NCBI GenBank assembly: GCA_964247055.1
Contig: OZ176051.1
Coordinates: 12,090,001-12,154,000 of the forward strand
Source: Paragordius varius
Taxonomy: Eukaryota > Animalia > Nematomorpha
DNA: 64,000 bases
Direction: 5' to 3'
Part shown: in pieces, positions 16,701-64,000 of the stretch
Numbering within the stretch: the first letter of the stretch is position 1
Layout: every line of letters begins with the position of its first letter
Translations under genes and position numbers: made by a program
The notes under the pieces: generated by a model
Databases searched by the model: none
What the model was told of the DNA's origin: nothing
Seen by the model: the letters and a program-made list of their open reading frames with translations, nothing else

Positions 16701-19700
16701 ATAAATTTATAAATATGCAAGATGTGATGGTAAAAAATTAAGATTGGAACCAATCTACTTTAATATTTCATCTATTTTCCCTTTTGCATGTCTAGTTAAA
16801 ATAAAATAAATTAATCTATTTTCCAACAAAAGACTATGAACTACAATATCAAAAACCTGGGGTAGGAGTGGCTAAACCCATAGCCTTGGCGCCTATTGGA
16901 GTGATTCCCGAGGGCGTGATTCCCCCCATCATGCCTTGTGGCGTGGCCCCCATGATGCCTGTAGGTGTGCCGGGAACACCGCCAAGCATGGAGGGCGTTA
17001 CCATGCCAACCTGAGGCGTTGCCCCTAGCAACGGAGTAGCGACCGACGGTGTTTCATCCCAACGAGACCTACGTTTACTGCTAGCTTGAGTGGGCGTGGG
17101 AGCCGTTGCTCCAGGGGTCGTCGACCCGGCTGCTAAAGCTGTTGGAGTAGCCTGTCATTGAATATGAATATAGCAAAATGTATTGTAAATCTATGGTTTT
17201 ATACTAGCTCGGTGCTAATTATTTACCTTTAATTTTTCATCATAGATATCACTCTCCGTCATACGATCGGTTCTAGGGGTTTCGGCCCAACCTGCTCCAA
17301 TTTTGTGTCCTGGTGTCTCTACAAAAAAATAAATCGAATTCTAATCAGAAATTCAAATTTTAATCGACAAATTTAAAAAAGGCAATTTAAAATTATAAAT
17401 TATAATATTAATTAATTTAAATAATGACTGACCTCCACGTTCTGTTCTAGGCGTTTCGTCCCATCTGTTTCTTCGGACACTCGGGGTGCCAGCTGTTCTG
17501 CCTGGCGTGGCGCTTCCCAAATCAGCTGTTCCGCCTCCAGGAGTGTGGGAAGGCGTGATAGCACCCCCTGGTGTAACAGCCCCCATACCGACATGACCTA
17601 TTATAACATATTTATTCTCAATTAGGATCATAAAAGTATAAATATTTGCTCTGTAGCAATTTTGTTTTCCCATATAATAGGATTAGGGATACCTTATTTA
17701 AGTTATAATATATATATATATATTATTGCTAGTTTTCATTTATATTTCTAAATGGCATCTACACTCGAGTGCAATAATTTTTGCTAAAAAATAGTCATAT
17801 AGGTATTTCATAAATGCGCGGTTAACCAAATATCTATTCCAAAAATATTATCTTACCCAATAAGACTTCGCTTTTTTAAAATGCTATTTAGCAATATTTT
17901 CTGATATACTTCTATATATTTTACTATATACTTCAAAATTAGATAAAATATATGGATAAAAAGGGTTTTTGTAATCAATGCCAAATGTTAAACTTGGTGT
18001 TTCGGCCCATTCAAATTCCATCATTTGACGTGTCATTTCGCCCGAAGGCGTATCCAAAAGAGTGCGACCAGGTGTGGCTGCATTCAACATTTCACGTCCC
18101 GGGGTCGGGGCAACTGCCTTACTCCTCGGTGTCATTTTTATCAATTGGGCTTGCTGGGATTAAAAAATGTAGACAATTTTAAATTATTCTAAATATTTTT
18201 ATAACATCTTCTATTAATAAAATATTATTACAATAAAACACTAATTATAATATATATGAGGATAATCATAGTAAAAAGGAAAAAATATAGACTTATGCAA
18301 AAACTACATGATAATCATTTGTTTTAATCTATTTATCATCTTTAAACGTAACCATTTTTTATTACTACATAAGTCCATATTCATTCGACCAAGATAGTTC
18401 AAAACAAAAGCAAAAAAGGGTGTGTGGTGTGTCTTTAAAAATAATTGGAAACTAACAAACTAAATTAAATGTAAATTTTTACCAAAACACAGAGTTAAAA
18501 AAGTCTGGCATAATACAAAAAGATATTATAATCAAAAACCTTTTGTATGGTAACCGAGTCTGCAGTGAGTGATTTAGGCGTTTCAACTGAGGTATTGTCA
18601 TTGCCTGTAATTTGGTCCCAACGTTGTTTTCGTTTTTGAACATTGAGAAGCGCTTTAGTTGGATCGAGTTCACCACTCTTAACTTTTTCATTGATTTGTT
18701 GGGCGTATGCGGCCTATTTATTCAGACATACATAAAAAAGGGGGTGCATAAATAAAAGGGAAGGTAAAATAATTGATGTAGTTTTCTTTAGCTGCGATAG
18801 AAATTATTTTAAAAAAAAATGTAAATTAAAAAGAAGGATTATCAATTATTTAATTGGTTTATAAAAAATTCAAAGCATAAAATTAATTGGTATAATGGTG
18901 TGTGTTTTAAATAAATAGTTTGTTTATCGTTTTTTAAAATACTGTAAAATTTTCTATTTAAAAAAACATAAAAATTATTAAAAACCCAAATTTTATACTA
19001 TTTAAATTTCATTTTTTCCATATAATTCAAGATTGGTTAGCTTGTATAAAATTGGCCTTTAAAAAATTGGCTTTTGTCCAAAAATAAAAACTAATAATCA
19101 AATTATTAATACTTATGCTATAAGAAAAATAATATATTTTCAAGTTAATTACTTCGGTTTTATCCATTTTTTGTTGTTTCATAACTTCAACAAAAGTTCG
19201 AGCATCAACATCGGGTGTTTTCCCTCCTATAAAAACAACAAAAACTTTAAATTATAAAAAATCATAAATCAGATCAAAAAAATTTAATCGTATTTATATT
19301 TACAAAAATAAATTTAAAATTTTGATAACTAGGTTAATTAAAGTGTAACCTTAATGTTTTCATATATATACACAAGCATTATTTATATAATAGCTATATT
19401 TAGGAAATGTATATCTTAAACTAAAATAAACATAAATTAAATTTTTGAAATGAAAAATTATTGAAATAATTAAACCGTATACCATCAGCAAAAGGATCAA
19501 ACCGAGACGGACTTAGTACTAATTTGCGCCTCCTTTGCTTATATTCGTCTTCTCTATCGATAATTTTAGCTGTGCGGTGCTCGGCAAACGGATCAAAATC
19601 CTAAATTTATCAAAAAAAAGAATATAAGTAAAATAAATGCCAAAAAAATATGGAAAATCGACAGTGTATATAAGCTTATTTTATTTATGATAATCAAGGT

Positions 19701-26779: not shown

Positions 26780-29700
26780 ATGATTGAACCGATTTTAAAC
26801 ATTCCACCCAAAAAGTATGGTATAATTGAGCCAAACGAAACATTTTATTTGGACCAAGAAGAAAACAGCTCTGAAACCATCACCAATTTTTTTCAATCGA
26901 AAACGAAATCTCGGCCTGAAATTGAAAATGAAAAACGTAACTTAAATGATTATAAGCTCTCTGAAGATATATATAGTAGCAACTTGCCATCAACATCAAT
27001 AACATCAGTCAAATTATTCACGGGTTGTCCAAATGTCCAAAAATTAGAGGAAAACTTAGAAACGGTCGCTCAAAACTCATCTGCTTTTCCAACTTTTTCA
27101 AATTCTAGCATTAATAATGGTCAGGCTCCATATTTGAACGGAACGTTAAGCACTTCTCCATTGATTGAAATTTCGAATGTTGAAACATTCAATATGCCTG
27201 CCTTAACGAATAAAAAGACAAAAATTTTATGCCAAACCTTAGAAAACAATTTGGGTGACATAAATTATCAAGTTGGTCATATAGTTTCCAACCAGGATAT
27301 ACTCTTCACTTCTCATGTTAATGATGGATCTGACCGTTCAAATTTTATTAGTTTTACCGATATTAATACCTGCAGCAAAAACAATAATATTAACAATTGC
27401 AATTCTATTATTCTCCATGATAATGCAAATAATCAATCTTTCGCACTTTGCAAACCCAATTCCCGTAAAAATCCTGAGAAGATCAAACTTTTTATTGGGC
27501 AAATACCAAGGGGTATGGAAGAAAAAGATCTTTTACCCTATTTCACGCCCTACGGAAAAATTATTGAATTTAGTGTTCTGAAAGACAAATTTTCAGGCCT
27601 TCACAAAGGTCCGTTTAGTTATTCATTAATATGAAAAAAAAATTAGAATTGTTTTAAAATAATCTATTCTAAATATTTCTGGGTATGTAGGATGTGCTTT
27701 CCTCACCTATGAAAACGATGAATCAGCCTTCTTAGCCCAAAAATATGTTCATGATCAAACAACTCTCCCTGGGGTAATTAACATTAGTAATTTTTTAAAA
27801 AAAAGATAATTTTTAATAAAATTAATTAACTTGCAAATCAATTTCTTAAAATATGCTCAATATTTTATTCAAATTTTTTTTATTAAATTTAAGCTTTTTT
27901 GCTGTCATTGTTAGAATGCAATATTCCAACCAACTTTTAGTTGACAGTAGCGTATGGCATATAACAATATAAGTCCATAAACGAATATTTTTTTTTCAAA
28001 AAAACAAGGGGATATTATGGATATGTATACATACAACTAAGCTTGTTTTTTTTTAAAAAAAAATTTTTATTCTTTTATGGACTAATAATGTTTCATGCCA
28101 TAGGCTACTGTAGTATTTCATTTGGTGATTTTTATTTAGTTTAAAACATATTTGTTGGGGGATGATTTAAATATAAATATGAATACTAGATGAATTATGC
28201 GTAAGACCATCTGTCACTTTGCTTATATATAGATAGATATATAGGCGTATTTTATCATTATTTCCTACCAATTTATATAATATAAGGTGCAATTAACATT
28301 TGCATTTCCTATGACTTATCTATTTTATATTATTAGGTCAATTAGTTGTTTGTATGAACAGAGGGGATTTTTATTTTCATATACATATAAATGAAACCCA
28401 TTACATACACATTAATGATAATTAATTTTATATTAATAATATATATTTATATATATAATTAATTAAAAATTAATATTATATATATGTTTTATTTTTGCAA
28501 TACCTTTCTATAAAATTGTGCTAGGTTAAAACGACATGTGTCAACTATAGAAAATAGATATATATAATTATCATTATAAAAAATTATTTGTACCTTTTTA
28601 CATATATGTATTCTACCACTAAAAATTATGCCATTATTTTCTTTAATATTGGATTTTCATCAACACACACACAATCCTAAATAAAAGATTTGACTCAATA
28701 ATAAATTTATATATTAGGGAAAGAGACTTTTCTATTTGTGAAAAGTGCAATGTACTTTAATTTTATATTAATATTCATAACTTACTATATCATTTTTATA
28801 AGTCCCGTTATAATTTTAATTAATTTTTTTGGAAAAGTTTAAAAATAAAGCTTAAAATGTTTATTTTTTTTGATTTTATCATTTATAATTAAAACTGTCT
28901 TCCTGGCTACAAATGTCAAAATTTACTCATATTAAAATACATCATAGAGTGATGTATCATTTGAAAAGAAAATTTATAACAGTTTCGTAAATATATACAG
29001 TAAGAGTAAGTATATACTTCTAGAAAGTTTTAATTATTACCAAATAGTAAATACAACCAAGGGCAGTATTATTGGCTTATAGTTATTTTTTTACTTTTTA
29101 CGATTATTAGCCAATAATACTGCCCTTGTTGTATTTACTATTTCGCAATAATTAATAACTGTCTAGCAAAGTATATATATACTTATTCATACTGTATCTC
29201 GTTTCAAAGAAATTTTAAACGTCAATCATTGTTAAATTTATACCTGTTATTTAAGTAAAAATATTAACTTAAAATTTAAATTAAATTAATTTTATATATA
29301 ATATCTCTATATAATTTTTAAAGCTTATCCGATAAAACAATTAGGATGTATCAACGGTAAATTACTTATATGTTGCAAAATATAATTAATCTTTTATTGG
29401 AAATCGATAGAGCGACAGCGCTACATTACGGATGAATTTAAATTTTAATCTAAACTCATATCAAGCCATATATAAAAAATATTTATTATTTTTCACAACA
29501 CAAAATCCAATTTAAATTTATATTACCTTATATTTTTGCTTCATGGTTCAACAAAATCATAATTTTAGCTTTATCAAATATATATGTAATATATGCATAG
29601 ATTTTCGCATTTATAAAATATTTTTTAGTTTTGCAAAAAAATTTGTGGTGGTTTTTTTCGTTAGTAAGTATTTCTGATTCCACCAATCATTTAAGTTACA

Positions 29701-32700
29701 GCGTTTAAGAATCCTCTATTGTACTTTACAATTTTTTTGAACTTCTAACTTTTTTAGTTAATAATATGAAAGTATATGCTTATACATATTAGGGCCATTT
29801 TAAACATAACCATTTGTTTTGGGGCTGCTTTAATAATGATAAAAATTGTTGACACTAAATGAATTATAGATGCGTTTCTAAAACAGATATATAATTATAA
29901 AAGGCACATACTTTTTTAATAACAATTAGTTAATCAGTGCAAGTATTTACATTAGCAATTTCATCTTTTACGGACATCAGACTGGTTTATACTTTTGGTT
30001 TAATAACTGTATAAAAACATTTTTATCATACAACTAGGCATTGATTCACACTCTAAATCAGCAGGGGGTTGTCAATACGTGGCCCTTTGAGACTTTCGGT
30101 GCGGCCCGCGAAGAATTCGAAATAATCCATGATAATTTGCAAGAACATATTTACATTTTCCAAATAGTTTTCCTTTTGAGTCCTATGTTGTTTGGTAAAA
30201 TATTTATCCATATATCGAATGCGGCCAGTCGTAATTTTAAGCAAAAAATGCGGCGCGCAAAGCCATTTGTATTGGGCATTCCTGCTCTAAATTGTTGTTT
30301 ATATTCAGAATGTCAAAAATTGTGATTTTTAAGCTATGTTCCATGATTTTGCAGGTTTGGTATGGTTTTATAATATCACACGTTTTTATCATTCTATATT
30401 ACAAAGGGGTTCTTTATATATGCAAAATGGGATTCATTTCTTTTTTCTCAAATATATAATTTGGTTTCTATGGTTCTTTAAATAATATAATATTTTACCC
30501 GTTGCATGACTTAAGCAACCTTTAAATTTTAATATCATAGAATTTGTTTAAACATAAATATTTCCCAAGACTGCTGTCCTTATGTCAGGTCATCAAATTT
30601 TGGTGATGTTAATAAATGTGGAGTTAAGGAGATTTGTTTAATAAATAATGTCAATTTGTTGTAGAAGGAAGGAAGGGTCTTTTATTTATGATTTTTGGAA
30701 TTTTATCGATTTTTCTCCTACTTAAAGTTGCTAACTAGCGTGTTATCTCTGCTATATAATTTGTTTAAAAAGCCTAATCTTTGTTTATATCAAATAAGAA
30801 AAAGCATTTTCCAATATATTTCTAGTTGTATCTACATATATAAGGATTTTATCTAACATATTTACTGTAGTTTGTATCTAGCATTTGCGAAAAAAGACTG
30901 TTTATATTAAATATGTTTGCTTATGTTTGGATTTAAGATGATAAGAAGCCATAGAATATATATAATACAAAATAAATATAAATAAAAGATAAGGGAAAAA
31001 ACGTAATATACATACGACATCATTTATACAGAAAATCTATATTTTTGTCCTTAACGCGCACGAACCTACCAAAATAAAGTCTAATGTTTAATTTATTCTC
31101 CCTTATACAATCCTAATTAATATGTAATATAAGTTTAAATTTTCTAACCTCTGAATATAATATCATCTAGTCATACCTGGCCCATATATTACGTTTAAGC
31201 TAAAATTTGACAACCTTATCAGATATCTTCTATAAATACTATGAAGTCTATCATATTCTTTAATTTATAGTTTTTCAATTTGAATGCAATTAATTCTGCT
31301 CCATTTAATGAATATTTTCAATCCGCAATATTAAACTGATTCCCCCAATTTTATTTATATATAAAGCAAACTTTTTGTTTTTGGGGCCCTTTTTTCCAAT
31401 TAAAACATAATATTATGACATCTTCAATCATTCCGAAATCATTTAATATATGTCCTAATTCGTCCCAAGATACATTTAGTAAAAGCATCCCTCTAAGTAC
31501 TGTTAAAAATTCAGTTACAGATGAAAAGGTATAATATGATAGTTTTTAAAAACTTTTTTGATTGGCAGAAAGATTGACGTTTGATAATGCACTACATATT
31601 GTAAAGTTTGTTAAGAAAATATAATCATGTATCTTTTATTTTATCAATAATTTATTTTTTTTCGTTAAATGAGTACAAATATTTGGTAAAGAATGGAAAT
31701 ATGATGAATATGATATTGTTAATATCACAGAGCTCTTCTTTTTTCCATTCTTTAACAAATATTTATCCCCATTTAACGAAAGAAAATAAATTTTTGAAAA
31801 AATAAAGAATACATGAATGTAATAAATAAAATTTGTTCTTTTTTATGTTTTGAGAAATAGGGTACTGTAATTTTTTTATATTAACACTCTTTATATACGA
31901 AGACCTAAATTTCTTTTTGCTTCACAAGAGCTAATTTTTACGGCTATGAAAACGCCCTTATTCACATATAAAATTATCAGTTCTTATATATCTTTAAAGT
32001 GAAAAATAATATCAAAATTATAAATCAATCCTGTTGACATGAAACATAGAGAGAGAGAGTTTCAGAAAGAATTATAATGTCTTTTATTGATTACAAACAA
32101 GCTTTTGATTCGATAAATGATGATTTCTGTGGGGAACATTATATTATTAGGGGTATCGTCCCACTTAATAAGATTGATTAGCTGTCTCTATGTAAAACAA
32201 ACAGTGAATGCCTATCTTGAAAGCAGTCAAACAAGGGTGTTGCTTATCCCCTTATCTGTTCAATATGTGCACAGAAATGATAATGAGGAAATTAGATGGT
32301 AAAAATATTGGAGTAAGAATAGGAGGGAGAACAATCAATTATTTAAGGTTTGCAGACGATATCACTCTTATAGCTTAAAGTGTAAGTAATTTAAAGGAAT
32401 TGATTGAAAAGATTCGAAAGGAAAGTTTGAGTTATGGTATTTAACCCTTATAAAACCAAAATATTATGTACTGGAGAAAGGCCTACAATAATATAGATGA
32501 AATGAAAACAGAAGTAGTTAATCAATTAACATTTTTTGGTGCTATAATTTCCGAGGATGGCTCTTCAAATGCTGACATCATAGAGAGAATAGGATTGGAT
32601 AGAGAAGCGATGACCAAATAAATAAAGATTTGGAAAAACAAAAGCGTAGGAGTTAAAACTAAAAGATTACTCTACTGTTTCGTTCACCTGGTAACCACGT

Positions 32701-35700
32701 ATGGTTGTGAGAGCTGGACTCTCAGAAAAAGGGACAAAGAAAGGATGGCTTTCTAAAGGAGCTGCTGGCGTGGAATTCTAGGATACACCTGGAAGGATAA
32801 AATTAAGAATGGATATCTAACTACAGAAATAAATCCTAGAACAAACACCCTGGAGATGATTCTAAAAAGAACGTTAACATAGGTCATGTCATGCGATCGA
32901 ATTCAATAGAGAAAGACACAATATTTGGAAAGGTAGAATGACAAAGGTAACGAGGCCGACCACCCATGAGGTGGTATTTCAATGCAGCGGTAAAAGGTAG
33001 AAGGAAGTGGAAACCAATAGTGAAAATATCCAAAAAGTTGTTTACGACTTAGGAATAACCAACCAACCAGACAACTTTTAAGCAAATATCATCTGAATTT
33101 ATTATAAACTATTTAATATTAATTTTCACTATTTACTGTATTATCTCATCAGTGATACACGTAACTTGATGTGATTTACTAGTGACAAAGTGTGTTACGC
33201 ATAAATTTATAATCAGAAAATTATTTACAATTAATTTATTGAGAGAAATAGGATATAATAATAAGGCTATGATAAAATTGAGGATTAGTCAGTGCTATAC
33301 TATTCAAAAAGTCCAAAATTAAATCCAAAATAAGCTACGCATTTTTACAACTTTTATTTAATATTTTTTATATAAATTGCAAAAATTTTATGTTTTAGAT
33401 GAGCAGACCCATGCAAGTGAAACCCGCGGATACAGAAAATAAAAATCAAGAAAGAAAGCTATTTGTTGGCATGTTAGGAAAACATCAAAACGAAGATGAC
33501 GTCCGGGAAATGTTTAATTCTTTTGGTACCATAGAAGAATGTACCATTCTTAGGGGCACTGATGGTGTCAGTCGAGGTTCACTTAAATATTTAAATTTTA
33601 AAAATTTTTGTAAATAAGGCGTTCACAGTTATGTATAATCTATTATGGTAAAATTATTTAGTTTTGATAAGACAAGAAATTTTCTATAACTTCCTTTAGG
33701 TTGTGCATTTGTCAAATTCCAGACTCAACAAGAAGCCCAGAGCGCTATAGCCAGCCTCCATGGAAGCAAAACAATGCCTGTATAAAATTTTCTTATTATA
33801 AATATTCAGCAGAAATCATTATTTAACCCTGTCAATTATAAGTTTCTAAAGTTCCTGCGACTGTAAATTATTTGTTTCTTGGAAAACCCTAATTACTTAC
33901 AGAGGCGTAGCTTGCATTTCTGACGCCCCTTCCCCTGTATGGGACCCCTGCTTTTTTAAAAAATAACCAAATTTAAATTATGGTCATGACCACTCATAAA
34001 TTGGTCATTTTCTTATGTTTTATTTAAATAATAACTTTTGAATAACTAATTTTTTGAGACAAAATTAAATAAAATTTCCCCTTTCCCCACGAGCTACGCC
34101 TCTAATTACCCAATCTAGCGCATTGGAAATATTTATCAAAAAATTCACCTATATTTTGCCTTAGGTTCTATTGCTAAACCTATCAGCTTAAAATTTATTC
34201 ATCGGGCATTTGTAAGAATTAAAAATTTGACTGATATTTGAATTAATATTTGGAGGTACAATAATGTGAAAATTAGATTAACACCGAAAAAATGCAAATT
34301 GTGTAAACATTATTTGATCTATAAATGATATGAATTGTATTAATTATTTTTTTTCAAATAATTGTTTCTTAAATACAGTTTTTCCCATTTTTAGCAATAG
34401 TGCGTAATCACAAATTTATTTTAAAAAATTAACCAAATTTTTTTCTCCAACCACATTAAAATCAGTTATCACCCTTTCCAATGGCTTCGAATATTCGGTC
34501 AATTATGTTACATCGGGAATCTAAATCTAGCATTTAACTCTCTTTTAATCCATTTTTTCACAGTATTTAGGTAATTGTTTTTCGAAAATTTAACCATTAA
34601 CTCGTTTAAACAATCTATTCCTTCTGGGATACAATTTTAAATTTAAAATAACCATTTTTAGAAAGTAGGGTGTTGTTCTTGGTTAGTTGAACACAAAAGG
34701 CATATATGCATTTTTGCATGATCCCTTCCCTTCACAAAATATTTTGATGGTAGATTTCGGGAAATTATTTATAAACCATATTAATAAACATAGGCATTAT
34801 TAATATATGCCACCTTTGGGCGTTGAGTTTATCGAGTTTTTAGAAAACTTATTAGGGAATACGGGGTCTCATATCCCTAAATACTAATTCAGGGACAGAA
34901 CATATAATAACACAAATAATTGGAAAACCAGACTTCATTAATATTTGAGTATTAAGTTTTTAATATATATTCAAGTATGGAATTAAACGCTTAAAATTGT
35001 AATAATTTAATTAAATATCACCGACAGAAAACAGTCGAAATCCCCGATCTAAAAATATTAAAAAACCAAGTTTTTCCCAAATTAAAATCCTGGAATCATT
35101 CAGAAAGCTTGGTAAATTAACAATTGAGTCAATTATATTAAAACCTTAGCATGCCTTAATTTAGCTATAATATCTAGGTACATTCTTATGGCCTAAATAA
35201 CAGGTTCAATTAAAGTTTTCCTTATAATTTTGGGTATTCTATCTAAAATGAAAACCAAATATTAAGCATATTTGCTGTAGATGTTGGTTTATTGCGTTAT
35301 ATTTTATTTATAGCTATATGCAACAATCTATGATGTCTAAAATCCCTTACTTCACTTAAAGCTTAACCGCTTGAAACGTAAAAAAAAGAGACCCATATAT
35401 AAGGTGACCAGACGTCCCGCTTTTGGCGGGACAGTCCCGCTTTTTCACACTTTGTCCCGCCTCCCGCTACGTTTTGGAAATGTCCCGCTTTTTCACGATA
35501 TAAAAAATTGTTTTTAATACATTTAAATTTTTCATAAAAAAAATTATTTTTTTATCCGTTTAATTAAATTTTTTATCATTAGTTATCCTTAAAATCTATA
35601 TCAATTTTGAATGAAATTTTTTTTAAAATTAAAAATATTTATTTTTTTCGAATTCATATAATATGATTATACACTTTGCTTCCTACTCCTACTGCCAACA

Positions 35701-47700: not shown

Positions 47701-49394
47701 GGTATACATTATTTTTAAAACTATCCTAACATTCGACCGACCAGTTAGGCAAAATCATGTGTATCTTTGGGAACAATTTTTATTTAGATTATTTTTTGAT
47801 AAATTGGTCGCATAATATATTTTGATAACTTATAGACTATATTACTTTTTTTAGCTTATCCCACAGCTTTGTACAATGCGTACAATCAAACATTTCCAAG
47901 TCAACTGACAACTAATGTGGCCAGTCAAAATATCACCAATCAACACCAAAGAGAAGGTGAATTAATTCAATCTTAAAGTAGAGGATTAATACGACAATGT
48001 ATATGTCCACAGAAATTTTATTCACATAAATTGAGCATCACCACTTAAACAGTTCAAAAACCTATTTTGTAAAAATTTTCATGTGATATTTTACTTGATA
48101 GGAAAGTATTAAAAATATATAACTAGGACTTTTATCGTCCTCGGCGAAAAAGGCAGATTTCTGGTTGTTTAATTACATTAAATCCTGGAATATATACGAT
48201 TTAAATGATGAGGAATCTCAGAGCTATTGTTTTGTATCATATTGATAATTTATTTTAAATTTTGTAGTTATTGATCTGCAAAAAGTCGCTAAAATAGCAC
48301 TTATTGATTAAATATATTTTTTTAAAAACGGAGGCTTGCTCGCATATATTATTGAATATGTCTAAGCCAAACAATCTAATTTTTAATTTTGCTGCGAAAA
48401 TATTTTTTATGAGCAATTTTTATAAAATAACTAGTAAAATGCCGAGATTGCGCGACAATCTTTAACATATGTTATAATAAACACAATAAAGGTTATTTTT
48501 AAAAAATGCATATATTGCTCAAATAATAAATTTAACAAAATTTTGTTACACCATATTTCATAGTATATTGAAGCAATAGGGAAAAGATGTAAAGTTTTTC
48601 ATATAATTCGATATTAATGAAGATTTCTATGACCTCAGAATTAATAAAAATAATAGTTCGCTAAATTTTTGTAATTTTTTACCTAATATAAATTTATATT
48701 TAATTTATGATGTGATAATCTTTTGCCTTATGAGGCTAAGACAAAAAATATTTTTTATATTATCTTAAAGCGTTTTTTATACCGCTTTCAGCATGCTTTA
48801 ATATACCATAAATTATACTACAACAAAATTTTATTGAATTTAACCATAAGCAAAATACGCATTTATTAGCTTATATTGCTCCCAGGCACTTTTAATTTAT
48901 TGTATAGAGCTAGTGCTGCTAGTGCTTATAGAGCACACATCTACAAATTAAAATTGTATACAAATATTGATTTGTTCGTAAATATTAATAAAATTTTGAA
49001 TTATTATAATTTATCATCAATAGGGCCGGAAGGATGCAATCTTTTCATCTATCATCTACCGCAAGAGTTTGGAGATGCCGAACTTATGCAGATGTTTGTC
49101 CCTTTCGGTTCAGTCATTAGCGCTAAAGTGTTCGTTGATAAGGCCACCAATCAAAGCAAATGTTTTGGTAAAATATTTTCAGTTAACATGGTTAATTTTA
49201 TATTTATTATAAGACTAAAATTGTATTTATACAAAATTACTATTGTTTATGTAATAATTTTATTAGGTTTTGTAAGTTATGATAACCCAACGAGTGCCCA
49301 AGCAGCGATACAATCCATGAATGGTTTTCAGATCGGGATGAAACGACTCAAAGTTCAGTTAAAACGGCCAAAGGATGCGAGCAAGCCATATTAG
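26780..49394 (+). CDS. CELF4: CUGBP Elav-like family RNA-binding protein, CELF3-6 class (CELF4/unc-75/bruno-3-like), 3 RRMs, about 1145 aa
   Basis: 17 phase-consistent exons: 26780-27608, 27691-27773, 33399-33576, 33700-33779, 38785-38954, 39552-39708, 40734-40928, 41312-41459, 41753-41871, 42559-42630, 42753-42834, 45400-46090, 46796-47010, 47572-47616, 47855-47956, 49024-49167, 49267-49394 (TAG). RRM1 is [10 protein letters not shown]…GCAFLTY. RRM2 is RKLFVGML…[15 protein letters not shown]3 is [27 protein letters not shown]…[17 protein letters not shown], characteristic of CELF3-6. The symbol marks the subfamily; the gene is probably co-orthologous to CELF3-6. The start codon and linker exon boundaries are less certain than the RRM exons. 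Confidence 0.93.
28998..29194. mobile_element. Tc1/mariner-type MITE (family A, copy 2)
   Basis: TA|CAGTAAGAGTAAGTATAT…ATATACTTATTCATACTG|TA termini, palindromic interior. Confidence 0.85.
30059..30284. mobile_element. hAT MITE (family D)
   Basis: Perfect 8-bp TSD CTCTAAAT on both sides, termini CAGCAGGGGGTTGTCAA / TTGGGCATTCCTG, internal GCGGCCCGCG repeats. Confidence 0.8.
32110..33075 (+). mobile_element. Decayed, 5'-truncated RTE-clade non-LTR retrotransposon (reverse transcriptase C-terminal part) in CELF intron 2
   Basis: Broken frames give [32 protein letters not shown] (the YADD-type box), [11 protein letters not shown] and RGRPPMRW, all RTE/BovB-like motifs. It ends in an (AACC)n tail. 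Many stops and frameshifts. Confidence 0.85.
33900..34104. mobile_element. Small GC-rich TIR MITE (probably hAT-type)
   Basis: TIRs CAGAGGCGTAGCT / AGCTACGCCTCTA, with a degenerate 8-bp flank attactta/attaccca. Confidence 0.65.
35722..36294. mobile_element. piggyBac-like TTAA MITE (family B, reversed) nested in the hAT element
   Basis: TTAA|CTCTTCGATTCAAATTGGGG…GTATCCAAGTG|TTGA termini. Confidence 0.8.
37364..37928. mobile_element. piggyBac-like TTAA MITE (family B) nested in the hAT transposase
   Basis: TTAA|CACTTGG…GAAGTG|TTAA termini. Removing the element and one TTAA restores the local transposase frame TGG ATA ACA TTA AAA CCA GAA TTT AAT TGG (WITLKPEFNW). Confidence 0.88.
38732..38762. 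repeat. (TA)n microsatellite
   Basis: TA run about 20 nt upstream of the CELF exon 5 acceptor. Confidence 0.9.
40201..40608. mobile_element. Foldback-type element (family F1) with 21-bp tandem arrays in both arms
   Basis: TATA|TCATTTACAGTTCAAATT…AATTTGAATTGTAAATGG|TATA termini. The right arm has about 7 copies of gggtgaatttgaattgttcaa. Confidence 0.8.
42005..42285. mobile_element. Degenerate foldback element (family F1)
   Basis: tcaaattcaccct units at left and inverted agggtgaa(a)ttgaattgtt units at right. The spacer resembles the spacer of 40201-40608. Termini are eroded. Confidence 0.6.
44600..44870. repeat. Palindromic dispersed repeat (family K)
   Basis: atgatgtaaacggtaaaa…ttataccgtttccatcat inverted pair, related to 57343-57622. 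Confidence 0.45.
46245..46437. mobile_element. Tc1/mariner-type MITE (family A, copy 3)
   Basis: TA|CAGTATGAGTAAGTAT…ATACTAACTCATACTG|TA termini. Confidence 0.85.
47066..47391. mobile_element. Foldback-type element (family F2) with 21-bp tandem array
   Basis: TA|CCATTTGCACTTCAAGAGTGTCCTT…AAGGACACTCTTGAAGTGCAAATG|TA termini, with about 5 copies of aaggaccaacttgaa(a/c/t/g)tgttc at right. Confidence 0.8.
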
Positions 49395-54748: not shown

Positions 54749-55857
54749 TATAATCATTACGATTCATTATCATATCTTATATATTTTTATAATAATAAAT
54801 TTTTTACACAAACAAATATTTTTGTGGATTTGAATGAAAATTAATCCAGCGGCCTGTGTAAATGGTCCCAAAATATTGGAAGTAATATAACTAACCAAAT
54901 TAACAGGTCAGATTTAAACCATTTTAAAATGCATATCTTAAAATATTGTATGGGGTCGCAATCATATCATAGTAGAAGAAATAATCAAATATAAATTATA
55001 CATAGTTTTACCCTAATATAAAATTTATTAATGAAACTTTTTAAATAATAATGAAATAATATTTTAAATAAATCTGAACAAAAAAGGATATTTAATGATA
55101 CAAATTTTATGCATTTCATTATTCATCATGGCTGTTTGACTCATATTTATCTCAAAAATGGTTGATTTTTTATGAGTTTGTGGCCCTCAATTTTAAAGAA
55201 GAATTTTATATTAAATATTACTTGAGATTTCTCTTTGCTCGTTTATTCGTTTTTGTTAATAAAATTAGAAATCCTTCTCCATTTCATCAACTAATATGGC
55301 TGTTAACCCATTTATGGCTAGATAGGGTCTAATGCTAATGTGACCAGATAGGTTGTTTTTCGCAGTACAGTACTGGGTTTTCAGAAAAAAACTTCGCCTG
55401 AACTGCGCCCACTTTTGTAATGCTTTTTGAATTAAAAAAAATATTTTTTTATAAATATATTATATACCTTTTATTTATTCAAAAAAATTATTTTAGAATT
55501 TAATATAGTACCGTCTGTAAAAATATCCCCATGATTTGTTAAGAAAGGTTCATTCGGTAAAAATAAGATTGGCCTATTTTTAATTGGTTAATATTCTATT
55601 TTCTCGAATTATACATAAAACTTAAGATTGCGCCTTTTCACGCAGTGGTGAAACTATTTATCTCGATCGTAAGATTCAGGCTAATGGCTCTTTCACTCAG
55701 GGCTTCCGCAAAAGGAGGTGCCTAAAAATACAAATAACTTAATTATGATATTTTAATAAATGTTTGATCATGTTAGAAAGTTTATTTTTTTTTATAATTA
55801 TCAAACGAAAAATTATATAGAAAATTGTTATTCCCATAACATATTATGTAAAATTTA

Positions 55858-57186
55858 CTAGCTGGCCGTGTTACGCTTGGCTGTGACGTATCACCGATAA
55901 TTATTCTTAATAATTTACAATAAATAGAGTTAATGGATATAAAAAAATAAGTAAAGCATATTTAACAAAAAGAATATCTTTGATTATTATTTTACGGGTA
56001 TAGGCTCAAATATTGTTTACTCAAAATTGACCATATTTAAACTGTCCCTTATTAAAGTTCAGAAATGTGTTTAACTCGTATGGCTTCTTAAGTTTTTTGA
56101 AAATTAGCTTTAAAACCACACCATTTTTGTATGGCGTCTCAGTTTTAAACCGGTAGACCCCACCCATAGACCTATATGGAAAAAGCGCTGTTAAATTTTT
56201 TGCCTTTATGAGGCAAATATTTGGAATCATTTTTGATATCATCGTATCATGGGTTATTTAAAAAAATACCTCAACCTCAATAATAATTATATGATGGCGT
56301 ATTTTTAGGGCGTAAAGGCCCCAAATTAACAAATTTTAAAAACCCCTGACCTTTTTTACATAGTTACGACTAATATTTCAAGCTTTTAATGATCTTATAT
56401 GGCTTCATAAATTTCCTCTAAATTAGCTCCAAAACAACGCTATTTCTTTATAGTGGTGCAGTTTTTGGCGGTTAGCTCCTAACCGCAGGTATAAAAAGGG
56501 CTGGGAAAATTGCCTTTAGATGGGGAATATCTGGAATTATCATGGAATCCATATATTCCTATTAGACTTATAGGTTTTCCGAAATTTGGCTCCAAAAGTA
56601 TGCTGTTTCGATATGGTGGCGCGGTTTTAGGCGGTTAGCCCCCTAACCAAGGGCGAAACAAAAAACGCTCGATTACAATTTTTGCCTTAATTCAGGTAAT
56701 AGCTGGAATCATGATTGATTCCATATGCTCTCATGGGATTTTCGAAAAATTGCCTCAAAACCAAAAGGTTTTTCTACGGTGGCGCATTTTTCAGAATAAG
56801 GCCTAATTAAGAGGTAATTTTATAAAACCGCTCTACTTAAAATTTTACCTTTTTACGGTTAACATTTCAAGCCCTTATTGAGCTCATACCTGATAAGTTT
56901 TCTAGAAGGCCTCCAAAGTCACGCTGTATCGATATGGTGGCTTGTTGGCGGGTAGCCCCCTACCCAGAATCCAATATAAAAAAAGAGGTTCTATAAAAAA
57001 TTATTGCCTAACCCGTTTTTTACACGGAGTTCGCCCGAACTGGGGGCCCAATTTAAAAAAGGGCGAAGCTATGGTCGGGGCATTCATTAATGATTATATG
57101 TTTTTGACATTTGGATTTGAATGGGTCTACCGGTTTTCCGGAAACAGATCCCAAAACCAGTATTTCCATTTTTATAAATATATAGA
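55858..57186 (-). mobile_element. Non-autonomous Helitron
   Basis: On the minus strand the 5' end is A|TCTATATATTTATAAAAATG and the 3' end is a GC-rich imperfect hairpin (gccaagcgtaacacggc) followed by CTAG|T. It is inserted between A and T with no TSD. No Rep/helicase ORF. Confidence 0.8.
56060..57010. repeat. Diverged ~160-bp tandem repeat (6 units) inside the Helitron
   Basis: The anchor motif (a/g/c)tgg(t)g(g)cg recurs at 56131, 56294, 56453, 56613, 56777 and 56934 (spacing 157-164 bp), with shared flanks gctccaaaa and ggcggttagccccta. Confidence 0.75.
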
Positions 57187-57342
57187 TTGTATATGGCATG
57201 TTCGATAACTTTTTTTTCGTATTAAAAAATTAATAATTTATACGTTTATACTCATCAGGGGGAGGTATGATATTTCTTAATTTTTTTCCTAAACTTTAAT
57301 TTTTATTGTTTTCTTATTTTTTTGTATAAATAAAGATATTTT

Positions 57343-57622
57343 AAAGCGTACTTCAAACTATTTTGAAGCATGATGGAAACGGTATAATGCTTTAAGATAT
57401 AAAACCCTTTTTCTAAATATTTCGATGATGTTGAACATTACTATAGGTTCAGAATTTTAATTTAAAGATTTGTTTGCTCGCAAATTTTGGCCAATTTTTG
57501 TAAAAAAACACAATAGTTCTTAGTGAGAAAAACGTATTGCAATATCAAATTAATATATATATAAAGTATATAACCAACCGTTCATATCGTTTCCATCATG
57601 CTAAAAATAGTAAATACGCTTC
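57343..57622. repeat. Palindromic dispersed repeat (family K), MITE-like
   Basis: gcgtacttcaaactattttgaagcatgatggaaacg pairs with cgtttccatcatgctaaaaatagtaaatacgc. Confidence 0.55.
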
Positions 57623-59445
57623 AAAAAATTTTGTTAAAAATTAAATTTTTAAAAGTATGGATTTTTTAAAAAATATATTTAATTGATATCAGGATTTAAC
57701 ATGTATTTAAAATTTACACAATGTCGGAATTTTTGCATTTTCTTTAAGAAAACTGTCCATTTTAAGAGAGCCAAAAAATTTCGGACTTTCAGAGCCCTTA
57801 TCTAACATAAAATTTTTATTGTTTTGATTTTTGTATGAAGTTTATATGTTTTAGTGATATTTTTTGAAATAAAGCATTTATGTTTTCACCAAAAAATATA
57901 TTTGAAAAAATTGCTCACCTTTTGCATTTTTTTGCTGTTTACCACAAAGGTGTAAATATTCTTAAATAACTCGCAAAGGTTAGGACCAGAAGCACCAGGA
58001 TAATCCTGAATTTTTCCTATCATAATATATATATTTCATCAGGATATTTTTTGTGGAAACTGTGTAATATACCATACCGATGGTGAAAAAACAGGCAAAG
58101 TATGTTTTAATTTTGTACTGCGTCCAAGTTCAAAGTATCTGGTCACTTTAGTCTAATCTCAATTATTATATATTACCGAACAAGATAGATAATTTTAGGG
58201 TACTTAAATACGGCGCGGTTAAATTGAAAAATATTTTTATATCAAATTTTAACAAACATCGTCAGGTATTAAAAAAAAATATAAACCCAATAGTCTAATA
58301 TCTAATAATTAAATATGGTAAGTAAAGTATTAAAAAGGAAAGGAGAATTTCCCACAAATTTGACATACTAAGCTTCATTAAAATATATAATTTAATTAAT
58401 TTTAATATATATTTTTCGGTATAAAATGCTGTGGTTTGAACGAAGATTAGCGTGGAAATCACGTTATTCTTCACGTCCATTTAGTACAAATTTTCCTGAG
58501 CATTGAATTAAAAAGGTTTCTACCTGCTTAATTTGCGGACTTGTCTTTTTACTGATTAAAGAGTTTTATTCGGTTTCCATAATTTGTAGATGGGGTTCTT
58601 TAGTCATCCATTGATCTTTACTGATTAAAAGGTTTGTGAATTTTGAGGGTTAACCTAAAATACACATTTAATTGTTTTTATGTTTCCTACATCAAAATTA
58701 TGCTAATTGGTTAAAATTTTCAGGTTATGGTTTAAACGAGTATAAGTGAATTTTGACATATATAAATAATTTTATTTTTATAATTTCAATAACCAATGAT
58801 GGATTTAATGTTTCACGGGCGTTTCAATGTTACATAAATCGATTATTCTAACCCAAAATAACGCTTTTTAACTGTGCTAACTGATTAATTTTTTGCTCCC
58901 CTGTCGTAAAAATTCATCTCATCAGGCCTCAAAAATCTTGTTGATAATATACTATTCTTTAAATAGTTTGTGTCAAGTTTACTGCCTATTTTTAGATTTT
59001 TTTATCCTAAGATGCAACCTAGTGATTATTTTAAGTTTTATAAGTTTCATCCATGACCAAGCCCCCGAATCTATTTTTATAAAAAATCCTATTTTAAGCA
59101 AAAATATTTTTAGAAAATGATCAGGTAAAACTGAAGCCTTATTTGGTCATAATCTTATTTTAGAACACTATATTTTATAAATAAGCGATACGCATATTTT
59201 ACCCTCTTTTGTGTAAAATAAGTGAATTAAATATTGACATAAAAATGATAAAAAACTAATATTAGATTTCAACAGAATTACACACCCTTTTTTGTTATTA
59301 TTATACATAAATATAACTATGACATAGTTATCAAAGAGATATCTGTTCATATTATTAACCTATTTCAACAATAGAGTGAGTACTATTACTGTGAAAGTTG
59401 AACAGTCATTAGCCCTTGACATCTGACGCAATATAAATCAGAGAT

Positions 59446-59465
59446 GCCCGCCCATATATATAAAA
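59446..59465 (+). promoter_or_regulatory. Candidate core promoter (GC box followed by TATA box) of the small secreted-protein gene
   Basis: GCCCGCCC at 59446-59453 is immediately followed by TATATATAAAA, about 60 nt upstream of the ATG at 59520. TATA-like strings are common in this AT-rich DNA; the GC box and the position are the informative parts. Confidence 0.45.
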
Positions 59466-59519
59466 AAGCTAAAATTCCAAATTAAAAGTATATTTGTTAT
59501 TGATAGTAACTTTGTAAAA

Positions 59520-61135
59520 ATGAAATTCTACTCCCTAATTGTAGCAATCATCCTTTTGAAAGCGATATATTCGGACCGTGGTAATTTTTTTTATTATCTT
59601 TAAATAATTATTGGCCAACTCTAAGAGTGTATTGCAGTATACGCATTCATGTTTAATAGGCTTGTATATATAATCATCATGTAAACTCACTAATACCGAT
59701 ATTTTTATAATTGAAAAAAAATTCGATTATCGCTGAATTTAGGTTATATTAAAATGATTTGTTAACTTAAATAGGTATTACACAATTGTTTTAGTAATAA
59801 ATATATTCGAGGATGGAATTTATGATTAAATCATTTACCATACCTTGGTAATATCTGCTTTATAGCAATCAATGAAAGCAACTTTTTTAGCCGATATTTT
59901 TTTATAATAAATATTTTTTCCATATAAATAAATTATTAGTTGCTAAAATTTTTATATAACAACGCATTTTTTATTCAATCTTTCAGAGATTTATGCAATA
60001 AAATAAAATAAGAGTTAGGGTCCTTTTTGCTTGTTGATTTAAAAATAAGGTTATTTGGGCCGATACTACCATAACAATAAACAATTTTTACTTATGAGAT
60101 TAATTTAAATTAACCATAAATGTACAAATATGTATATTTGTTATTCAGTTACCGAAAATTTGAGAATAACATACCAAAAGGATCCCAATAGACCCGACTG
60201 TAATAATTGTTATAAAGTTGGTCGATCGTATCATCCTTATGTGTACAGTGTATGGGTAAAGATCACTCTCAAGGATAAACTGTTTTATGATAATTATGTA
60301 AGAAATAAAATACTTGATTATCTCATTTTATTTGAATCAAATTGGGTTATCTAAAGATTCCAGATTTTTAGATTGATTTAATTTACTATCCCAAAATAAA
60401 TTATATCAATGAGCCAAAATATATAAATAGAAATTTGTTTTGAAAAAGGTTCCATATCAAACTATTCGACGCCTATTTATTTTAAAAATTTTCTGCAAAA
60501 TATTCTGTTGTTTATTCTAACGCTAAAATTAGAGTTTTTATCATAAATATCGTATAAAACATACATAACAGAAAAAGTGGTTTATTTTGCATTATATTTG
60601 TATTTAACTAATCCATTCATGCCATGTTAACAAATTTCTTTATCTTGAAGTGTTTATCCATAAAATAACTAAAAAAATTTCATGATTTTTTTTTATATTT
60701 TGGTGCATCAATATAAGTGGAAACTTTTGCAATAAAAATATTTGATTTTAAACAGGCTTGAGCTCCCCATAGACCCCAATTTGAATCGGAAACTGTTCAA
60801 GAAATATGCAATATCGAAAAACAATTTCAATATATATTGTTTTAAATAATATTAAAAAGAGATATTATATGAATATATATGGTAATTGCAAAAAAGCAGA
60901 ACATGCGAAAGCTTTAAACTGGTTATAATACTTTAATGCCTCATTTACGGTCATATTCTAAAAACTTTCTTTTATATTTTCTAAAATTTAGATAGTAGGC
61001 GAAGATGTTACCGTAAATTTCAGGGATCACCGTGATGAAATCTTTCACGTACTTATGACATACAAATTAAATAATGGAACCAAATATGTCATAGATGATG
61101 TCTTTAATCCTCAAACATGGGACCGATATCATTAA
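59520..61135 (+). CDS. Small secreted protein of unknown family (103 aa, signal peptide, CxxC pair)
   Basis: Exons 59520-59580, 60149-60255 and 60992-61135 (TAA), with GT-AG introns in matching phases (1, 0). The translation is MKFYSLIVAIILLKAIYSDRVTENLRITYQKDPNRPDCNNCYKVGRSYHPYVYSVWIVGEDVTVNFRDHRDEIFHVLMTYKLNNGTKYVIDDVFNPQTWDRYH. AATAAA follows at about 61192. All three exons are GC-richer than their flanks. Confidence 0.8.
60335..60800. mobile_element. Degenerate family B TTAA MITE (reversed) in intron 2 of the secreted-protein gene
   Basis: acagaaaaagtggtttatttt, ttccatatcaaactattcgacgcc and ttttaaacaggcttg…ccccaatttgaatc match reversed family B. Termini are eroded. Confidence 0.65.
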
Positions 61136-61419
61136 CTCGTTTAAACTTTTACCTTTTACTGAAAAGTAGTTCAATTTAGTTCACACATATTAAATAAATA
61201 AATTAAAAGATTGTATCTGATTAAAATTTATTTTTATTATATTAAGAGGTTTAGTGATACTCCTTATTCCCAAATAAATATTGATATATTACAATATCTT
61301 TTTTCGTTTTACATGGTCAGTTAAATTTTAGGAATTTTAACAGGCTTCTACGCTGAAAAAATAGTCAGCTGATTCGTTCTGGCATATTCATATAATTGTG
61401 TAACTAATGCTTCAAACAA

Positions 61420-61603
61420 GAGTCGAGTTATTATTTGCGGCCCGTGGAAAATTTGGTCAATAATATAGTAAAATTTAAAATTTAAACCAATTTTCTGGAT
61501 GAATCCATCCAATACGCAAAACTAGGTTTGCATAATAAAACTATTATTAATGCCCATATATGTTTCCAGCCCGCAAAGCCATTTGTATTGGACGACACCC
61601 TTG
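61420..61603. mobile_element. Partial hAT MITE (family D)
   Basis: gcggcccgtggaaaattt…gcccgcaaagccatttgtattggacgacacccttg|ctttaaac matches the right part of family D. Confidence 0.6.
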
Positions 61604-62110
61604 CTTTAAACATTATACTACCCTTTTCCCAAATAAATGTCAAATTGATATTTGAAAAAGACAACAATTTAAGATTATAACTTTTTATGGTAACATACTT
61701 TGGGATCATAATAATTCCGCGCCTAATCAAATAACTATATCAAAACACAATAATTATTATGCGATCTTTTACTATGGCTATGATTGAAATTAAATGATTT
61801 GATAATCTAATTTTTAATGTTTGGTCATCTCATACATAACAATAAAAAAATTTAAGTCATTAAATAATAGTCAAATATTTGTATATTCTGTTTAAGAGTT
61901 GATTAAAATATAAAACACCGATAATATGTAAAAATAAAAGAGGTATCAAGAGTGTTCTGTAGACAATTTAGGATATTGTTTAACTGTGATAAAAATCCTC
62001 ATAAAAATATTAATACATTTTCTGTACTTTAATGTATACCTTTAATTTAAAGTTGTTTTAAATTGAATAAATTTTTGATTAAGAGAGGAATTCATGCTAC
62101 AATGAGAAGC

Positions 62111-63354
62111 TTAGGTATTTCCAAATATAATTTTGGTAAGTTTTGTCAAAGATCGATGTAGATTCCTATCGCACATCAAATATATTTGGACCACTGTTAT
62201 CAGGTAAAACAAATCAATCCACATAACAAATTCCTTAAAATCCATCAAATAATCGAAATTAGGCGTTCCCTGTAAAGCTCGGTATATGAGATCATACAGA
62301 TTAACAATAGTTTCAGGAAACATACAAATGAAATAGTAAATAGGTAAATACGTTGCTGTAGTTAAATTAAATTGGTTACATCGAGTTATGGTAGGAGAGT
62401 TGCATTCTAAATGATTCTTATTACATTCCTTGTTTAGGGCTGACTCTCCATTAGCTGGTGGGGATTGAGGTTGGTTTGATTTAATACCTTGTGCATCTTC
62501 GAAATTATGAATTGTATCGGTTGTTTTTAAAGCAATTTTTTTCCTTACAATTTGTGTCATTTTCGTCCATGTGGTTTCATGATTGGCTCCGGGTTTAGTT
62601 AATTCACCACAAATGAGACACATACAAAATTTAGGATGATTGGATACACCATAAAATACTTTTAATTTTCGACTCACTAACCATGCGCAAACAACGATCA
62701 CAATGATTGGGAAAAGGTGGAAAAAACACAATAAGATCCCAATGATAATGGATTGATATAGTACATAGTACAGTTGAAATTCATAGTATACCTCATTGTT
62801 TGCAGTTAGGCAGGGGATGATTTGACTACTGAAACCGAGAATCCCATTCAACCCTAATTGAATGAGCCAAGTGACCCAGGGTAAGCTGATCCAATATTTT
62901 TTGAGGGTGAGAACCCATTCCGTATATACGTAGGGTTTACTTAAAGCTAACCATTGATCAATCATAACGAAGCTTATGCACACAAAGCTATTGTAAAATA
63001 GGGATCTAGAAAACATTTTACTGTATATGTAGAATAGCAACCAATCATACTGTGGTACGGGTGAACCATAGTAATAAAATGGTAACTCTTCAAAATATCT
63101 ACTCCACATTAGCATGCAAACTACAATATTTTGTGCTGTATAAGTTTCCAGAAATAATAGGCTGGTTGTTTAATATGATTTAACACGGAGGTAAGAATCA
63201 ATAATCCTATAAGATTGCTAAATACGCCCATAAAAATTAATATCGGAACTAAACGTTGTCGAAATATTTCATTTCCAGGGCCCAAAACAATGTGGTCGGA
63301 GCAATTATCAATGTAATTCCTTTGAAAATCAATATCCATTTTCATGTTATTCAT
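62111..63354 (-). CDS. Intronless class A (rhodopsin-like) 7TM GPCR, resembling FMRFamide/myosuppressin/Srw-type peptide receptors; frameshifted at about 63152 (pseudogene or assembly error)
   Basis: ORF 63354-63121 supplies the N-terminus and TM1 (LVPILIFMGVFSNLIGLLIL). ORF 63115-62111 supplies the rest of TM2 through TM7 (MIDQWLALSKPY, YYFICMFPETIVNL). The two frames overlap, and adding one T in TATTTC restores a 414-aa ORF reading KQPAYYFLETYTAQNIVVCML. Confidence 0.8.
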
Positions 63355-64000
63355 AGTATTATATTAACTTTTATAAAATATTTAATATATATACGGGTAC
63401 AGAGGGGTAAAATATATGGTTATCGGAAAATAAATTAATTTTTTTTAGAGTTTATTTAAAAATAATTAGATAACACATGTATCGATATTTCTTTCCATTC
63501 CTAATATATACCAAATTTTGTTGACTCATATTTTTAATATTGAGATATTATATAGCTTTAATAGTAATAGTTAACCCCGCCCATCTTAAATATACCTTCG
63601 TCTCTATTCCCAACAATATTTATTACGGATGTTTTATGATTTAGAGATTGATTTTTCAAAAAAGTAGGCCACTATTTCAAAAAATGCTAAATATAAGTTA
63701 AAAAAACTTCAAATAGCGAGCGGAAGGCTAAATCTATCTCCAAAACTCGCACCGATTATAATCAAGCTACCCTTATACCCAAATCCCTATAACAGAAAGG
63801 TTTTTTACGAATTCAGTCCTCAAAAATCATGTTTTTATAACATTTTCCCGGGAATCGCTAGATCTTTTCAACGGTGCGCACAAATTATGGATCATTATCA
63901 ATCGACAGATATTGGTTTCAAAATTAATATCGAAGGGAATACCGTTAAAAACTAGAAAAGTTTTTTTAGTTTTTGCTGTTAACCAAAATTAAAACATCGG

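Follow-up and report, generated by a model that had tools for sequence, protein, structure and literature searches.

A probable three-exon gene with a small, presumably secreted beta-sheet product, and its diverged paralogue, in an AT-rich hairworm genome

The window analyzed here, a stretch of 64,000 nucleotides of Paragordius varius DNA (C2:12090001-12154000), has the base composition of AT-rich animal DNA (GC ~27%) and belongs to an assembly of 110.5 Mb in 44 contigs, on which all genome searches were run. Toward its 3' end lies a compact three-exon gene model (Table 1), which very probably corresponds to a real gene, the chief support being a second copy with the same layout on another chromosome. 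Joined end to end, the 61-, 107-, and 141-nt coding segments yield 103 codons in one frame from the ATG to the stop. Both introns follow the GT-AG rule, with phases 1 and 0, and their splice-site words are similar to those of HSP70 introns in the same genome. The exons of the window copy differ from its introns in GC content (0.34-0.38 vs 0.23). Exon 3, which carries the motif VNF-x2-H-x2-EIF ... Y ... KY-x-I and is predicted to form a beta hairpin, starts right after an in-frame TAG, as does its counterpart in the paralogue. Read-through past the exon 2 donor meets a stop after 8 codons in the paralogue but continues for 32 codons in the window copy, which favors the proposed donor. A three-exon model had been put forward in an earlier note on this DNA, and every coordinate in it, both junctions (59580/60149 and 60255/60992), and the length of 103 aa agree with the sequence. 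The accompanying remark that the open reading frame track shows a mere fragment of exon 2 needs correction: the open frame at this place (60109-60351) is 81 codons long and covers the whole of exon 2 together with non-coding flanks.

Table 1. Features of the three-exon gene, of its relatives in the genome, and of other loci (positions are those of the window unless a locus or contig is named; a slash marks the exon-intron junction)
Feature	Position	Strand	Description
GC-rich 8-mer GCCCGCCC	59446-59453	+	Sp1-type GC box in complement; immediately 5' of the TATA word
TATA-box-like 11-mer TATATATAAAA	59455-59465	+	65 nt 5' of the ATG
ATG	59520	+	earliest in-frame ATG of its open frame; none further upstream
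Exon 1	59520-59580	+	61 nt; 20 codons + 1 base; donor G/GTAATT; phase 1; GC 0.377
Intron 1	59581-60148	+	568 nt; GT..AG; GC 0.227
Exon 2	60149-60255	+	107 nt; acceptor TTATTCAG; donor G/GTAAAG; phase 0
Intron 2	60256-60991	+	736 nt; GT..AG; GC 0.235
Dispersed repeat in intron 2	60386-60790 (approx.)		~400 bp
Exon 3	60992-61135	+	acceptor AAATTTAG; 47 codons (141 nt) + TAA at 61133-61135
Two overlapping AATAAA	61193-61202	+	~60 nt past the stop
Paralogue TATA word	L002:309-319		identical TATATATAAAA; 82 nt 5' of the ATG
Paralogue exon 1	L002:391-457		ATG at 391; 22 codons + 1 base; hydrophobic; donor G/GTAATT, as in the window copy; phase 1
Paralogue exon 2	L002:750-895		donor T/GTAAGT; phase 0
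Paralogue exon 3	L002:1489-1608		starts exactly 7 codons before VNF-x2-H-x2-EIF, as in the window copy
Exon-3-like piece on C5	L024:1450-1584 (C5 ~1760194-1760328)	-	open frame
Frame with laminin-type EGF matches	2600-3055	+	PF00053, E 2e-04
Exon matching SF3b1	16852-17154 (region ~10.7-18.7 kb)	-	PF08920, E 8e-06
Open frames with RRM_1 matches	26780-27634, 33399-33617, 48876-49394	+	
Reverse-transcriptase fragment	32208-32378	+	RVT_1, E 5e-09
Segment of ~40% GC	56450-57230		open on both strands
Convergent neighbor	62114-63363	-	352-codon open frame and an upstream 80-codon piece; several hydrophobic spans
Short gap between two HSP70-matching segments	L005 (C4 ~12482550-12482580)		28 nt; GT..AG

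The genome search identified the exons as single-copy DNA and confined the repetitive sequence to the intronic stretch; therefore, the gene is not transposon-derived. The repeat within intron 2 has more than 40 scored copies of 68-82% identity on many contigs (1569 candidates at first look) and probably represents a family of short non-autonomous transposons. The segment of ~40% GC upstream of the gene, one peptide stretch of which recurs at a locus on contig C1 (L025), is probably another dispersed repeat. On the other side, the convergent neighbor was placed by the ESM Atlas among rhodopsin-type GPCRs (score 0.94), with no 7tm match in Pfam, and has the look of a receptor gene that has diverged strongly. 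Elsewhere in the window, the open frames with RRM_1 matches are probably exons of one or more genes for RNA-binding proteins, and the reverse-transcriptase fragment, a retrotransposon remnant, lies among these RRM-domain exons. The exon matching SF3b1, together with neighboring high-scoring frames on the minus strand, suggests a gene for splicing factor 3B subunit 1, and the frame with laminin-type EGF matches probably belongs, as one exon, to a gene for a receptor or a protein of the extracellular matrix. Outside the window, the short gap on contig C4 was observed in an HSP70-like locus.

The promoter and poly(A) words reported in the earlier note, namely GCCCGCCC, TATATATAAAA, and AATAAA, are present in the sequence. 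The GC-rich word occurs once in the window vs 0.11 occurrences expected; a word of this type is absent upstream of the paralogue, and the promoter role of the window word is putative. The TATA-box-like 11-mer has five copies on the two strands of the window (128 kb) vs 1.67 expected, and an identical 11-mer precedes the ATG of the paralogue. The AATAAA of the paralogue stands 43 nt past its stop. AATAAA and TATA words are frequent in DNA of 27% GC, and AATAAA alone provides weak support.

The paralogue, with a product of 110 aa, was found through a weak own-genome match of exon 3 on contig C7, with a genome-wide E of 0.22, which is not significant alone, and the locus (L002) was then read directly. 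Compared directly, the two exon 3 translations are 37% identical along 35 residues that align without gaps (pairwise BLASTP, E 2e-08), a score reached by 0 of 20000 shuffles. In the alignment of the exon 2 translations, the blocks L-[RK]-[IV]-T, Y-K-[VI], H-P, and Y-V-Y are shared by the two copies (E 0.004, pairwise BLASTP); the score of this pair was reached by 108 of 20000 shuffles, and its similarity is below that of chance matches in a control set of 154,000 residues. The two unlinked loci have in common the intron phases, the order of the exons, the start of exon 3 relative to the motif, the TATA word, and the GC contrast, which in the paralogue amounts to 0.30-0.39 in the exons vs 0.20-0.21 in the introns. 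At the DNA level, identity between the copies of exon 3 at codon positions 1, 2, and 3 is 0.44, 0.62, and 0.38, respectively, vs 0.325 for random intron registers, and 5 of the 13 identical residues are encoded by differing codons. This pattern is that of an old divergence under protein-level constraint.

When profiles of both exon pairs were compared with the genome, the two copies and a weak piece on contig C5 were recovered, and no others. The back-translated motif pattern had exact matches in the two copies only, with mismatched matches occurring at the control rate. Local profile searches covered the window, the 10 kb past its end, and the flanks of the C7 and C5 loci to a distance of 10 kb in both directions, and no tandem copies were detected. 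The C5 piece is 52% identical to the C7 copy over 23 residues; neither exon 2 similarity nor a signal-peptide or otherwise hydrophobic first exon was found nearby, and the piece may be a third, partial member of the family or a fragment. An exon-2-like match within the window (32303-32386) is in another frame of the reverse-transcriptase fragment and was dismissed as a chance one. By these searches, the family has two clear members and is known so far solely from this genome. The word orphan, used in the earlier note, was too strong, given that the gene is not a singleton and that the search for paralogues in the genome returned the diverged C7 copy and perhaps the C5 fragment.

In both copies, exon 1 encodes a segment that reads by eye as a signal peptide, which was sought as a basic n-region, an uncharged core of 7-15 residues, and small or neutral residues at positions -3 and -1. 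The N-terminus of the window copy combines Lys2 with a hydrophobic core of 11 uncharged residues and with I-x-S ahead of the likely cleavage site, and that of the paralogue has R5, a core of ~16 residues, and V-x-S before the likely cut. The mature part starts with acidic or polar residues in both copies, and intron 1 lies two codons past the proposed cut; an intron two codons past the cleavage point is a common layout of signal-peptide exons. Hydrophobic N-termini arise easily in AT-rich DNA. The arrangement proposed in the earlier note, a signal-peptide-like exon 1 followed by a phase-1 intron, is seen in the window copy and recurs in the paralogue.

Counted exon by exon, the predicted mature part is 85 aa long in the window copy, and that of the paralogue 90 aa. 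The two are of similar composition, with 12 and 13 acidic residues, 11 basic residues each, 4 and 5 His residues, and 13 and 15 aromatic residues in the window copy and the paralogue, respectively. The Cys content is 2 in the window copy and 0 in the paralogue. Alignment of exon 2 places the CxxC of the window copy in a six-residue loop stretch that is missing from the paralogue. The emphasis that had been put on the CxxC is not borne out at the level of the family, one member of which has neither the loop insertion nor any Cys in the mature part; likewise, assignment to redox or metal-binding proteins with a thioredoxin-like CxxC fails, the CxxC not being conserved between the copies. Structure was predicted with AlphaFold2 on single exons out of their context, each with a two-row alignment. 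For exon 2, strands were predicted at residues 4-10, 21-27, and 30-33 with moderate confidence (pLDDT 67), and for exon 3, also with moderate confidence (pLDDT 72), the model consists of a hairpin (18-25 / 31-38) and a short C-terminal helix.

Relatives outside this genome were sought with single exons of 35-47 residues and, in word searches, with open frames of 81 and 71 aa, a choice of lengths that lets complete proteins of 100-110 aa through the length filter. In Pfam, searched at E up to 10, the exons belong to no family, the sole sub-threshold match being to DUF1521 at E 0.11, far below the cut-off of that family. Single exons found no match in the PDB sequence search and no relative in the ESM Atlas (best score 0.76), and the word index yielded no candidates for exon 3, for the 81-aa frame that encloses exon 2, or for the 71-aa frame of the paralogue. 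A metagenome scan with the exon 3 alignment and an Rfam search of window positions 55000-64000 found nothing, and the literature on the hairworm genome or secretome held nothing useful as context. The lack of a recognized family, as claimed in the earlier note, is thereby upheld at exon-wise sensitivity, with no true relative emerging from the Pfam, PDB, ESM Atlas, word, HMMER, and metagenome searches. This absence of relatives is limited because queries of 35-47 residues miss kin as distant as the paralogue: such a relative (~30 bits) would fail in a library of 1.8 billion proteins.

A full HMMER search with exon 3 produced one match (E 3.8e-04), to a bacterial RTX protein of 1694 aa (P0001) with seven HCBP_related repeats (PF06594, RTX calcium-binding). 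Residues 9-37 of exon 3 align with the second half of each repeat of this protein at 32-36% identity, and the pattern F-R-x-H ... F ... NGT is common to the repeats and exon 3. The match turned out to be an artefact of adding up weak scores from the individual repeats, among which no single stretch exceeds 5.5 bits. Against the same protein, the profile built from both copies reaches 4.2 bits, and a search with the paralogue alone returned no match. Nor was PF06594 among the Pfam matches of any exon at E up to 10. Judged by these scores, the likeness to HCBP_related is taken as a chance resemblance.

The most radical alternative to a gene is that AT-rich non-coding DNA happened to offer open frames, GT and AG words, and a hydrophobic start, which were put together by eye, and that the look-alike on C7 is coincidental. 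Loose models do arise this way: an enumerator set to a minimum of 90 codons in three exons with a hydrophobic N-terminus found 14 starts in the real window vs 3-10 in each of 20 locally shuffled windows. Because the shuffled 64-kb windows give ~6.5 such starts on average, the assembled open reading frame by itself is not significant. Codon usage, scored with 1964 codons from the HSP70 and tubulin exons of this genome as the training set, was unremarkable and did not discriminate: among open frames of 35 codons or more, exon 3 ranked in the top 9%, and exons 1 and 2 only within the top third. This alternative also draws on the commonness of TATA and AATAAA words at 27% GC and on the genome-wide E of the exon 3 match. 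With an exon GC of at least 0.33 and an intron GC of at most 0.25 added as requirements, thresholds that were chosen post hoc, the present model alone remained in the real window, and none in the 20 shuffles. In the C7 locus, the enumerator obtained a three-exon model with a signal peptide from a single ATG, which is collinear with the homologous exons. Coincidence would have to account for two unlinked loci that share collinear similarity in exons 2 and 3, intron phases, the codon, relative to the motif, at which exon 3 starts, a signal-peptide-like exon 1, an 11-base TATA word at a similar distance, and the GC contrast; by our own rough estimate, with terms that are not fully independent, the product of the separate chances is ~1e-5 or lower. 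No single figure is overwhelming, and jointly these modest collinear signals make an origin by chance very unlikely. The gene stands beyond chance because the paralogue shares its plan, the open frame alone being insufficient, and we accordingly assign the no-gene alternative very little probability.

Granting a real gene, its N-terminus might stay uncleaved, as a signal anchor or as a segment targeting the protein to another compartment, in which case the protein would not be released. The hydrophobic stretch of the paralogue, at ~16 residues, comes close to the shortest length that can span a membrane, and the window copy has a Lys within the segment before the proposed cut, both of which fit this possibility. 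However, the 11-residue uncharged core of the window copy is too short to span a membrane, and both copies combine I or V at -3 and Ser at -1 with a basic residue close to the N-terminus, an acidic or polar start of the mature part, and an intron two codons past the cut; retention of the segment is, in our judgment, unlikely. It is also conceivable that at least one of the two copies is a relic, a young or decaying frame that is barely or no longer expressed and intact by chance. The family is tiny, the C5 locus keeps an exon-3-like piece alone, and the exons occur in no protein of the public collections searched, within the limits of length and sensitivity of these searches and with the proteome of this genome itself possibly absent from them. 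Against decay stands the fact that both full copies retain a start, a stop, four splice sites, and an open frame despite saturated third positions (0.38 vs 0.325). Such intact frames argue for long-term selection on the protein because they are hard to explain otherwise, and we regard relics as quite improbable.

We consider it likely that a real gene resides at this locus and that its product is a small, secreted protein of beta-sheet type from a two-member, lineage-restricted family. A TATA-type core promoter would direct the synthesis of a short mRNA of ~0.4 kb, presumably spliced from the three exons as predicted. The 103-aa precursor would enter the endoplasmic reticulum by means of a signal peptide encoded wholly by exon 1, with cleavage probably after Ser18 (Ser20 in the paralogue). 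The resulting mature protein of ~85 aa would be near-neutral, rich in aromatic residues and His, and folded into about five beta strands, with the CxxC as a copy-specific extra in a loop insertion rather than part of the family core. The protein would most likely act extracellularly, as a small binding or structural protein.

The organization of the locus resembles that of lineage-restricted genes for small secreted proteins, such as gland, cuticle, immune, and parasite excretory/secretory proteins, in which a signal-peptide exon 1 is followed by a phase-1 intron. As here, such genes are compact and have a TATA-type word, a mature product of less than 100 aa, fast-diverging paralogues, and no outside relatives. 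This likeness describes a kind of gene and not a homologous family, with no link in sequence or fold to any named member, and secretion and expression in the present case are predictions. The high and tissue-restricted expression that the earlier note associated with this layout is a conjecture for this gene. The gene seems to be an ordinary lineage-restricted one with a small secreted beta-sheet product. A more specific role, that of a secreted, parasite-specific effector with a new small beta-sheet fold, directed at the arthropod host, perhaps to evade its immune system or to manipulate its behavior, appears highly unlikely.

Small secreted lineage-specific proteins are the usual source of factors in parasite-host interaction, and the pair described here is a reasonable entry in a candidate list for secretome work, with nothing to set it apart from many such animal genes. 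For the poorly studied AT-rich genome from which it comes, the analysis adds what is probably a genuine gene, along with its paralogue, to the gene set, and it indicates that weak own-genome matches can validate hidden small genes here through shared intron phase and position.
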